From Paramicrosporidium saccamoebae KSL3 (lineage: Eukaryota > Fungi > Cryptomycota), in NCBI GenBank assembly GCA_002794465.1, contig MTSL01000159.1, positions 31,298-63,297 on the forward strand: a stretch of DNA of 32,000 nucleotides, in the 5' to 3' direction. The notes under the pieces are model-generated. The model made no database searches. It was not told the DNA's origin and saw nothing but the letters and a program-made list of their open reading frames with translations. The stretch's first letter is position 1, and each line of letters starts with the position of its first letter. This document shows, in pieces, positions 1,115 through 30,100 of the stretch. The position numbers and the translations under genes were made by a program.

Positions 1115-1247
1115 CGAGCATTCTAGTGTACTGCGTTGGCCTGTGACCTGTGGCCTCCAGCTGAAGGATGCAGAATGCTAGATAAGTAGGTGACCGGAAT
1201 TTGGTGTCTGTGCTATATCACATTCTCCCATTACGGTAATCACACAA
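1115..1247 (+). ncRNA. Candidate bipartite box H/ACA snoRNA (rRNA pseudouridylation guide)
   Basis: Hairpin 1 lower stem AGCATTCT(1117-1124)/AGAATGCT(1172-1179); H box AGATAA (1180-1185); hairpin 2 lower stem GGTGACCG(1189-1196)/CGGTAATC(1234-1241); ACA at 1242-1244. The pockets are complementary to conserved SSU and LSU rRNA segments. Confidence 0.7.
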
Positions 1248-1308: not shown

Positions 1309-1696
1309 TTACTTGTATCCGTATGGTGCGGTAGTTGGGAGCTCTACCTTTGTGTAGTGCGGGTAGAAGTGGACAGGGCGGCGGCATTCGTGCTTCTTGG
1401 AAAAGTACGTGTAGCGCTCTAAGGGAGACAAGTGTGAGTACCGTAAAGTCAGGTTTGCGCGGTCCTACGCATCAAGCAATCTTTCACAAGAGAGATACAA
1501 GTGCCTTCATTTCTAATCCAAGACTATTCAATATCGTCAAGGTATTTTCAACATTTTTAAGTCTTTCTCGGATATGGCTCTTTCGGGATTGACTCATCTT
1601 ATATGGCAGTTTGCTAATACTATAAAAATGCATAAAGTGGCAGTACCGTAAGTAACTACCAAGCGTGACACTGGAAGCTCTAAAAGGTCCTAACAT
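1309..1696 (-). CDS. MRPL31: Mitochondrial ribosomal protein mL60 (fungal MrpL31-like), 2 introns
   Basis: Spliced: MLGPFRASSVTLGSYLRKLPYKMSQSRKSHIRERLKNVENTLTILNSLGLEMKALDRANLTLRYSHLSPLERYTYFSKKHECRRPVHFYPHYTKVELPTTAPYGYK. Colinear with yeast MrpL31 motifs (MFGPFK...WKIPWRMS..QK.RQRERLRNVD...KDKYWTFDKK...RKGIHKVPKWTK). Intron 1 is 1614-1646. Confidence 0.8.
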
Positions 1697-13415: not shown

Positions 13416-13488
13416 GGGGGTCTAGCTCAAATGGTAGAGCACTCGCTTAGCATGCGAGGGGTACTGGGATCGATGCCCAGGTCCTCCA
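13416..13488 (+). tRNA. tRNA-Ala (anticodon AGC), intronless
   Basis: Cloverleaf GGGGGTC/GTCCTCC with the G3:U70 Ala identity pair; D arm GCTC/GAGC; anticodon arm CTCGC-TTAGCAT-GCGAG; T arm CTGGG-ATCGATG-CCCAG; followed by a T5 Pol III terminator. Confidence 0.97.
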
Positions 13489-13528
13489 CTTTTTCGTGCA
13501 GTCACAATGTTTTGTAGTATTGCTTTAT

Positions 13529-27167: not shown

Positions 27168-30100
27168 TTACTCTATACGACGCGACTTTTTGGCCGCTCG
27201 ATCCTGCTTTTGCTGCTTGCTGGCCAGAATCCTCTTCATTTTGGCTCTCTGCTTTTCCGCTTGCACTGCATCTTCCTTTGCTTTCCGTTTCTGGTGTTCT
27301 GCACGCGACGCCTTTATCTTGACTTGACGCTTCATCTCCTTGTCGCGTCGGATGGTGCCGAGTTGCTGCATCATTGACAGTTTCTTCCGCTCGTCCTTTT
27401 CTAGGATCACGGCCCGACTGGCAAGATAGCCGGTGGACTTTGTCGCCACAGAATCCTTGGGCTTGCTGGCATAGGGGAGGTTTTGTTGCAATGACTTGGG
27501 GATGTGAAGCGGGTTAAATCGACGGGGAGTGCGCTCAATCTCGCGATAATGCGAGTCGCGCGGTCCCGTAGGAGTGGCCAAATCACGTTCGGCCCGCAAT
27601 TCCACATTCAATCGCATTGCCGTCCAACCCTCGGCATCATCAACCAATCGAGACAAGACTGGATTATACAGCTTTCTGGGTGCCACAGGGTACCAGGCAC
27701 GGAGAAATACAATGTCGCTCTTGAGCAATTTGTCCTCAAAGGTGGCACGAAAGGCTCCAGGTGGAGTGGCAACACCCTTCTTGATCTGTCCTCTAATCCC
27801 AGAGACACTTCGCAGAGCGGCTCCCTCAAACTTGCATACCTCCAGCGGCGAGGTGAACATGTCCTTAATAAAGGCGGTATTCTTGTGAATGTCGTAGGGA
27901 TATCCAACCAGCTTTAGCTTCTTGACCGCAGTCATTGCCTGGTCAAATTCGAGGATCGTTCCAGTCGCACAAATACGGAAGCCAGACTGTCCTTCGGCCA
28001 CACTGCGGAATGCACAGAATCCCGTATTCGGAGGTACCACTGGTCCATAAAAGGTTGCAGTGCAATGCATATGCTCCGGAGTGTATTTTATAAGACGGTT
28101 CCGCGTAGCATCCTTCATCGAATAGATGGGAATGGACTGGAACCGGCGCCATCCAATGGAGAAGACAAGCGGCTCATTGTTCTTCAGAATCTTGGGGAAC
28201 CAACGATGCTTCTTGAGTCGAGTCTGCACAAATCCAACATTTGATTCGCTTGGCAGTAAACCTCCGAGGATCACAATCGACTCGGGACGGAAGTACTTTA
28301 TAAACTCGTATGGCATCCGCTCGATCACTATTCTCACATATCTTCCTGGCTGCACACCTTCCAGTTCCTGACGGGTCCTTGGATCCTCGTGCTCAAATTC
28401 GTCTCTATTCATTGCCAATTGTTTCTGCATGCTGTTCTTCATCTCGTCATAGTAATTTTCGTCAACATCCTCTCCATCATCTTTACCCAGTCTGCCGTCA
28501 AATTCTGCATCAAACTTTTTCTTCAACTCCTCCTTTCTCTTTTCCATTGCCACGGCAGGATCCGTCTTTGTTGAGGGTGATTTTTCAAAGTCTCGGGAGC
28601 CTTTTGCATTAATATTTAAATTTTCTGTCCCCTCCTCCAAGTCTTCAAATCCATCATCTGACTCTGCGTCATTGTCTAGATTTTGTGTTTCATTCTCCAA
28701 ATCCTCAAACCCACCATCTGATTCTTCAGCATTGTGCTGATCATCTGGTTTCGCAGTAATGAAGCGGCTACGCAGACTTTCAAAAAAGTCCTGATCGGAA
28801 ATGGCTTCCTCTTCCACCTTGTAAGTGTCAGTGGTGTCTTGATTTTGGGCTTGATCCCTTACCCGTCTCAATCCAGCGTCATCTTCAAGATCAGACTGTG
28901 CACTCTCATGCTCATCACTGTGACCAAGAGAATCAACGTCACTACTGTGGTCAGTGTCAGAATCATTTTCCCCGTCGTCACTGTGGTCAGTGTCTAATTG
29001 GACGGGTGCGGTGGATGATTTGAATAGAGTCATGTGACTTTCCTCCATTGCCTCATCAACCGGTCTCAACTTTCCCCTTTTCAACGAGCCAAGAATCTGC
29101 TCTCCATCCTCGTCCTCAGAATCGTTGGTCTTTTTTGTGGGCATGTCAATGTAGATGGCATCACGATCGTAGACAATCCCAGAAACATCCGACATTGGTG
29201 CATAAGTAAGTCGATTCTTATCGGTTAGGGTCTTCATTTTGCGATCGCTTTCAGGGAGAGGACAGGGATCATCCAAAATGGTCACATTTCCGAGCGGATA
29301 ATCACCGGCACCGGGAATATGCACCGAGGCTGACGAGCGAAGATTACTGCCACGCAGCCATCCATAAAACACGATATTTCTATCACACTTTTCATTTTTC
29401 TGAATCTCCACGGCTGGAGTCAAATCTTCCACCCGGTCAGCAATAACGTAAGGATGCGAAGATCGCCAAACAATGGGACGTGGCTTGGTTACCGAAATGA
29501 ACCGTGACAAATTCAAAATCTCGCGTGGCAAATATCTCCCATGGAGCAGTCCTGAGAGATAGAAGAGCTTGGCACCCTGATAGATTTCGGTCCAGAAACG
29601 CTGCTTCAGCTTTTTCTTGGTGTTTCTTAACGACTTGTTGTCTTTGAAGGAATCTAAATGGGTCAGCACTCCGATTACACGCGGAAATCCATGTGTTTGC
29701 AGCAGGTTCAGAAACTCAAAGGTTTCCATGGAGAAGCCCTTTCTTGCATCAACCAATAGCAGAACAACGTCCACCACCTTGGCAACGTCAATCATAGTGT
29801 TAAGGTCTGAGGTGCATTCCACAAAAGTGACTCGTTGTTTCCTCCCTGCCACCACTGTCACAGGTCCTTTGATCGTTCCCAACGACTGTTTGGTGTATCT
29901 TTTGACTAAGGATCTAATCACAGTGGACTTTCCGCATCCCACCGGTCCCACCACTGCGACCACGGTGGGAGGCGCCTCCACCGGCGTCCGGTCCATTATA
30001 GGGACATGCAGCTTATTCTGTGCCAAATCCTCCCGTCGCTGCTGCATTTTTGCAGCATTTCGGGCTGATGCAGCTGTGAACGCCTACGCATGAGAAATCA

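Follow-up and report, generated by a model that had tools for sequence, protein, structure and literature searches.

A candidate box H/ACA snoRNA with a single predicted 18S rRNA guide pocket in Paramicrosporidium saccamoebae

The locus, its neighbors, and its relatives

In Paramicrosporidium saccamoebae KSL3, a gap of 280 nt separates the stop codon of MRPL31 from the start codon of Taspase, both encoded on the minus strand. Does this gap contain an RNA gene on the opposite strand and, if so, which target would the RNA act on? An earlier note had proposed here, at 1115 to 1247 on the plus strand of the window (the whole stretch of 32,000 nt analyzed, to which all unlabeled coordinates refer), a box H/ACA snoRNA with its own transcription and two rRNA targets, one in the small subunit (SSU) and another in the large subunit (LSU). 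Its motifs were all found where it had placed them: GTGTA (1126-1130) and AAGG (1164-1167, with A1164 located 16 nt before the H box) for a first pocket, GGAATTT (1196-1202) and CTCCCATT (1225-1232) as the 5' and 3' elements of a second one, and ACACA (1242-1246) in the ACA-box region. The explanation that we consider likely is a box H/ACA snoRNA at 1117-1249 of the plus strand, whose 5' pocket would guide the equivalent of human 18S Psi1692 and whose 3' hairpin would have no conserved guide function. This is probably a real, functional, and previously undescribed RNA with a single guide pocket for the SSU; the one paper found to mention both Paramicrosporidium and snoRNA does not describe it.

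The neighbors were correctly named as Taspase and MRPL31. The first exon of Taspase (PF01112; relatives are named "taspase" by JGI) starts with the ATG at 1031, and MRPL31 (mL60, PF09784) extends from about 1696 to its stop codon at 1309-1311, both on the minus strand, so that the candidate RNA is antisense to the two genes, with the Taspase ATG lying within 85 nt and the MRPL31 stop within 60 nt. On the plus strand, the 25-codon gene RPL41 (PF05162) is found at 1866-1943, with the mitochondrial S18 gene (PF01084) further downstream. At the Rfam gathering threshold, no snoRNA family was detected in the whole window, and the sole match was a tRNA-Ala (AGC) at 13416-13489 on the plus strand.

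Some other features of the window deserve mention in their own right. RPL41 encodes MRAKWAKKRMRRLKRKRRKMRARSK, followed by the stop codon, and probably has an intron in its 5' UTR, given a splice-site-like motif GGTAAGA near 1761 and a TAG directly before the ATG. An 82-nt conserved block at 1861-1942, detected by blastn against contig L002 and suspected of being a further noncoding RNA, is explained by this gene (88% identity to both L002 and L003). MRPL31 has a putative intron of about 33 nt (about 1614-1646, minus strand, GTACTG...TATTAG), proposed on the grounds that L001 has a frameshift, and L008 a stop codon, in the homologous stretch. Introns that short are unusual. Finally, an open reading frame of 959 amino acids at 27168-30047 on the minus strand, corresponding to Bms1, is 100% identical to PSACC_02391 of P. 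saccamoebae, and its next-nearest relatives are metagenome proteins at 67%. An exact look-up of an open reading frame from the window had no match on record.

To look for the element elsewhere, homologs of Taspase exon 1 were used to retrieve contigs from both metagenomes and public read sets. MRPL31 and Taspase keep their tandem order in L001, L002/L003, L004, L006, L007, L008, L013/L014, L015, L016, and L017 (in the last, read from the sequence and not by tblastn), while four distant, nonsyntenic loci were among the matches listed in a metagenome scan with a Taspase profile. The RNA element was present at the syntenic spot and on the same strand in six sequences, namely, the window, L001, L015, L016, L008, and L017. 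A strict pattern (GUGUA, a closed upper stem, AAG, 14 to 16 nt, ANANNA, and 5 bp or more in the lower stem) matched the syntenic gap of the window, L001, L008, L015, and L016, on the strand opposite to the two genes, and likewise that of L017. In 300 shuffles of the 32-kb window, on both strands, it occurred eight times, about once per 2.4 Mb. Set against this rate, its appearance in five other contigs, all rozellid-like, puts the feature beyond chance.

A covariance model (R1), built from a four-sequence alignment (window, L001, L015, and L016) and then used to align further sequences, recovered the element at the syntenic position in L017 (E = 0.003), L004 (E = 0.005), L005 (E = 0.008), and L008 (E = 0.017 to 0.019). 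This search gave nothing credible in L002/L003, L006, or L013/L014; a weak match at 3532-3605 of L002/L003 (E = 0.6 to 2.7) overlaps the start codon of RPL41 and was taken as chance. In L004 (969-1036, minus strand) and L005 (125-192, minus strand), GUGUA and AAGG are kept and the H-box site reads AGACCU or GGACCU, neither of which fits ANANNA; these copies could be either functional variants or pseudogenes. A C.A mismatch in the lower stem of L004 appears as a U-A pair in L005. In L007, the 3' half of hairpin 1 and the H-box region have become a tandem array (1961-2112, period of 36 bp, about four copies) and GUGUA is gone, suggesting a snoRNA gene copy in decay. The altered H box of L004 and L005, the duplication in L007, and the absence from L002/L003, L006, and L013/L014 indicate that the RNA is dispensable in some relatives. 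Across these contigs, some lineages thus keep the element, and in others it is decaying or has been lost.

Hairpin 1 and its predicted 18S target

Folding the window sequence on its own gave a structure no more stable than those of shuffled sequences (z = 0.04), and the minimum free energy (MFE) structure buries the H box and competes with the pocket. From a single sequence, the architecture would not beat chance. The evidence comes from comparing the two hairpins across the relatives. In the window, the lower stem of hairpin 1 is a perfect helix of 8 bp between 1117-1124 (AGCAUUCU) and 1172-1179 (AGAAUGCU), directly followed by the H box AGAUAA (1180-1185, consensus ANANNA). Enclosed by this stem are the 5' guide strand A-GUGUA (1125-1130), complementary to UACAC(AC) of the SSU, an upper stem-loop closed by the pair C1131-G1163 (1131-1163), and the 3' guide strand AAGG-AU-GC (1164-1171), whose AAGG is complementary to CCUU.

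The window and L001 agree at 68 of 69 positions in hairpin 1 and the H box, compared with 73.6% identity in the flanks (Fisher p = 1.7e-6), and the sole change in the hairpin, C1154 to U, preserves pairing as G-U. L001 shares the lower stem of the window, which reads GCACUC/GAGUGC in L015 and L016 and GCAUC/GAUGC in L008 and L017. When seven sequences were aligned with the covariance model, 87% of the cells of hairpin 1 were paired and four of the seven lower-stem pairs had changed on both sides. The covariation score was 0.371 versus 0.199 in shuffles (0 of 500 reached 0.371) and at most 0.15 in slid controls, values that come from a small sample and from an alignment that was fitted to the structure of the model. 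With guides and boxes held unpaired, five sequences (window, L001, L015, L016, and L008) folded as hairpin, hinge, hairpin, and tail, at a cost of 1.7 to 8.4 kcal/mol over the MFE. These folds, the covariation of both lower stems (see below for hairpin 2), the conserved boxes, and the synteny in six sequences support the assignment to a plus-strand box H/ACA snoRNA.

The guide halves remained constant across relatives while the lower stem covaried and the upper hairpin diverged. GUGUA is unchanged in all eight sequences that carry the element (lengthened to GUGUGUA in L008 and L017), and AAGG is also unchanged, except for AAGU in these same two contigs. In all the lineages compared, both halves adjoin the upper stem directly, GUGUA on its 5' side and AAGG on its 3' side. 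The upper part of the hairpin (32 to 37 nt) cannot be aligned between lineages apart from the retained closing pairs CAG/CUG. The H box follows the first A of AAG at a distance of 16 nt in four sequences and of 14 nt in L008 and L017, so that all six fall inside the rule for H/ACA RNAs, by which the pocket lies 14 to 16 nt upstream of the H or ACA box (PMC2780460). The H box itself begins 0 to 1 nt past the lower stem and conforms to ANANNA in the six: AGAUAA in the window, L001, and L016, AGAAGA in L015, AAAUGA in L008, and AGAUCA in L017.

Downstream of AAGG there is a variable spacer of 1 to 3 nt (AU, UU, CCU, or a single U) and then an invariant GCA (1170-1172 in the window). Pairing of this GCA with the UGC of CCCUGCCCUU in the SSU, the spacer being bulged out, is conceivable; alternatively, the GCA may have a structural role. 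From A1168, the earlier note had predicted an altered base in the SSU of this organism. The position is U in L015 and L016 and C in L004, and the stretch varies in length. Being unconstrained in the relatives, it does not predict a U in the SSU, and A1168 behaves as an unconstrained bulge.

The fit of the first pocket to the SSU motif CCUU-UG-UACAC was borne out, with legal spacing and guide bases invariant across relatives. The 5' and 3' guides form 5 + 4 bp with the motif in the window, L001, L015, and L016, 6 + 4 bp in L004 and L005, and 7 + 3 bp in L008 and L017. These 9 to 10 contiguous bp in total are at the short end, and they were scored against the universal SSU motif. The motif is part of a near-universal eukaryotic SSU sequence, that of the universal eukaryotic primer 1380F, CCCTGCCHTTTGTACACAC. 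The target left unpaired is the last U of UUUG in CCCUUUG, 11 nt upstream of a conserved Cm and equivalent to human U1692. The 18S of Saccharomyces cerevisiae has the same target sequence, and this site is not known to be among its 14 pseudouridines. The complete rRNA modification map of Schizosaccharomyces pombe has nothing between m7G1616 and Cm1680 and hence no Psi at U1669, and the list of H/ACA RNAs of Neurospora crassa includes no guide for this 18S site (PMC2780460). As a caution, in Microsporidia the SSU differs just 5' of UUUG, the very place concerned by A1168: primer ss1342r implies CUGUUCUUUGUACAC, and the bases 5' of the target motif are GUUCUUUG. Regarding humans, the earlier note had named SNORA70/U70 as the guide of Psi1692, which agrees with the snoRNABase entry as cited in PMC9610020. 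A second source conflicts with it, assigning U1692 to SNORA64 and SNORA70 to 28S U4975 (PMC7760958); the two snoRNAs were probably swapped there. On the basis of this complementarity, the RNA would most likely direct the pseudouridylation of one SSU site that is modified in humans and unmodified in S. pombe.

It could also be that the RNA is a genuine H/ACA RNA whose 5' pocket has another target (a different rRNA site, an snRNA, or pre-rRNA processing) or none at all, the fit to 18S being coincidental. The pairing involves just 9 to 10 contiguous bp, assessed on the universal SSU motif, and fungi often have orphan H/ACA RNAs (in N. crassa, 7 out of 20, PMC2780460). Nevertheless, the upper stem is bordered exactly by GUGUA and AAG(G), which are at legal spacing and stayed invariant where the stems changed, and we estimate analytically that a fixed bipartite 9-mer plus the U would be expected by chance only 0.005 to 0.05 times in about 5.5 kb of rRNA. 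We consider a coincidence of this kind unlikely and retain the 18S site as the predicted target.

Hairpin 2, strand, and putative promoter

Hairpin 2 extends from 1186 to 1243, with a lower stem formed by 1189-1196 and 1234-1241. An ACA is found 1 to 2 nt past this hairpin in all six homologs. In L001 the region reads AUACA, so that only the ACA at 1244-1246 is shared. In H/ACA RNAs this box lies 3 nt from the mature 3' end (PMC2780460), which gives a predicted tail at 1247-1249 and a predicted 3' end at 1249. Therefore, of the extent proposed previously, the RNA itself was upheld, and its 3' end, which had been based on the ACA at 1242-1244, moves from 1247 to near 1249. The gene would span from about 1117 to 1249 on the plus strand, some 133 nt.

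According to the earlier note, hairpin 2 formed a second pocket directing a pseudouridine in LSU domain I, at AAUGGG(U/A)GGUAAAUUCC (28S segment GGGUGGUAAAUUCC), and the RNA was a dual guide. GGAATTT and CTCCCATT are indeed present, and L001 conserves the 3' element UCUCCCAUUA, as does L016 in part. Several observations speak against the pairing. The distance from C1225 to the ACA is 19 nt (box at 1244) or 17 nt (box at 1242) versus the 14 to 16 nt required, and the unpaired dinucleotide in the pairing as proposed is G-U and not U-N, which would make the substrate base a G. The 5' element overlaps the lower stem, of which G1196 is a base, and it is not constant, since A1198 is U in the closest relative, L001. 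The 3' element is helical in turn: GGUG (1203-1206) can pair with CAUU (1229-1232), A1233 being bulged, and by manual reading of the alignment and folds this helix is retained in L015 as GGUG/UACC plus a bulged A. The guide bases are absent from L015 and L016 (L015 has CCCGGG... and ...CCUACCA there), where hairpin 2 folds as a near-continuous helix, a rod with no pocket. No open second pocket appeared in any predicted fold, and hairpin 2 has no conserved open pocket. We know of no Psi in this LSU region in either yeast or human. A dual guide is thus very unlikely, and both the LSU target and the SSU variant predicted from A1168 should be dropped. Hairpin 2 is probably a nonguide structural module bearing the ACA box.

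The lower stem of hairpin 2 is informative about the strand. From the window to L001, A1193-U1237 becomes G-C, G1196-C1234 becomes G-U, and G1190.U1240 becomes A-U, with pairing kept in the three cases. For hairpin 2, taken from the window, L001, and L015, RNAalifold predicted seven lower-stem pairs, three of them changed on both sides (4 of 17 across all pairs). The wobble changes fit the plus strand only, because they would be C-A mismatches on the minus strand. By eye, we also considered a minus-strand C/D-box RNA or a structure in the 3' UTR of MRPL31 and discarded them: no C or D boxes were seen, and the wobbles become mismatches.

Another explanation, which we consider very unlikely, is that there is no RNA gene and that the conservation reflects regulatory DNA, either the promoter or 5' UTR of Taspase or, on the minus strand, the MRPL31 3' UTR. 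The vicinity of the element to the Taspase ATG (85 nt) and the MRPL31 stop (60 nt) might suggest this, as might the CCAAT and TATA-like motifs that persist in L004 and L007 despite their degraded H/ACA features. Against it stand the compensatory double changes in two separate stems, the substitutions from G-C to G-U and from G-U to A-U that would be C-A mismatches on the minus strand, and the H and ACA boxes, whose positions with respect to the stems are fixed in six sequences.

Returning to the snoRNA gene, its upstream region carries a CCAAT box at 1059-1063 on the plus strand (position -58 in both the window and L001, -53 in L015), which is also found in the gaps of L004 and L007 and may serve the divergent Taspase gene as well. 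A TATA-like box, TATTTAAA, lies at 1082-1089 on the same strand and is a putative promoter element of the snoRNA; all six homologs have such a motif, 30 to 43 nt ahead of the first stem. L008 and L017 carry it as a canonical TATAAA located only 6 to 10 nt from the Taspase ATG. This is badly placed for Taspase and makes plausible a Pol II promoter that is either the snoRNA's own or bidirectional. No plus-strand gene able to host the RNA within an intron was found at the locus, and RPL41 has its own short upstream region. The independent transcription claimed from the outset is therefore plausible, the RNA being antisense to both neighbors and having a TATA-like box upstream in all six homologs.

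The analysis establishes the fold, how it is conserved and covaries, the boxes and their spacing, and the complementarity to the universal SSU motif; from these we infer the promoter, expression, RNP assembly, and modification as follows. Pol II would transcribe the RNA from its own TATA-like promoter, or from one shared with Taspase, about 35 nt upstream. The transcript would take the hairpin-H-hairpin-ACA form and make up an RNP with Cbf5, Nop10, Nhp2, and Gar1. Its pseudouridylation pocket would be the internal loop in the 5' hairpin, where UACAC of the 18S sequence CCCUU-U-G-UACAC would be bound by GUGUA and CCUU by AAGG. This would leave the final U of UUUG free of pairing where the upper stem begins, at 16 nt from the H box, to be isomerized. 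The 3' hairpin would provide a second protein-binding module and the ACA box, with no conserved guide function.

Evolutionary reading and comparison with known systems

One evolutionary scenario, which we regard as doubtful, is that the RNA is the rozellid ortholog of vertebrate SNORA70, with Psi and guide dating from the opisthokont ancestor or earlier and lost afterwards in ascomycete yeasts and Microsporidia. If it were an ortholog, canonical Microsporidia would have lost this guide together with all SSU-directed guides, Paramicrosporidium-like lineages would represent an intermediate stage of snoRNA loss, and the decayed copies of L004/L005 and L007, as well as the absence from L002, L006, and L013, would be loss in progress. 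SnoRNAs are essentially uncharted in Rozellomycota, and a conserved SSU-directed guide in Paramicrosporidium and its uncultured relatives would help to date the loss of SSU guides on the way to the reduction of the microsporidian ribosome. The predicted Psi falls at a functionally placed site of the 18S, in the neck and beside the decoding region. The family is absent from Rfam, and the covariance model with its six sequences could seed a new one and improve annotation. Otherwise, this is an ordinary member of a well-understood class.

SNORA70 (U70, RF00156) is the obvious point of comparison, as it is also a box H/ACA guide and, going by the snoRNABase assignment mentioned above, it is directed to the same predicted 18S uridine, human Psi1692. 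The candidate has no detectable similarity to it in sequence or structure, and no Rfam family, SNORA70 included, was hit at E ≤ 10 by positions 1000-1400 of the window or by the element loci of the five homologs (L001, L008, L015, L016, and L017). Besides, vertebrate snoRNAs are almost all intronic (PMC2780460), whereas the candidate has a putative independent TATA promoter.

The independently transcribed H/ACA RNAs of fungi, such as the ACA series of N. crassa and the yeast snR families, are similarly intergenic, with a putative Pol II promoter and the hairpin-H-hairpin-ACA arrangement (PMC2780460). Many RNAs of the N. crassa type have a predicted guide pocket in one hairpin only, as does the candidate, and most of them exceed 160 nt in length, compared to its approximately 133 nt (PMC2780460).

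The H/ACA RNAs described in the microsporidia Encephalitozoon and Nosema (Belkorchia et al. 2017, PMC5499648) resemble it in being compact, with TATA-like promoters, in the reduced genomes of a related lineage, and some of them have a single functional pocket (PMC5499648). They are all LSU-directed; no SSU-directed snoRNA was found, and the authors asked whether any exist in Microsporidia (PMC5499648). In contrast, the candidate described here, from the rozellid sister lineage, is predicted to be directed to the SSU.
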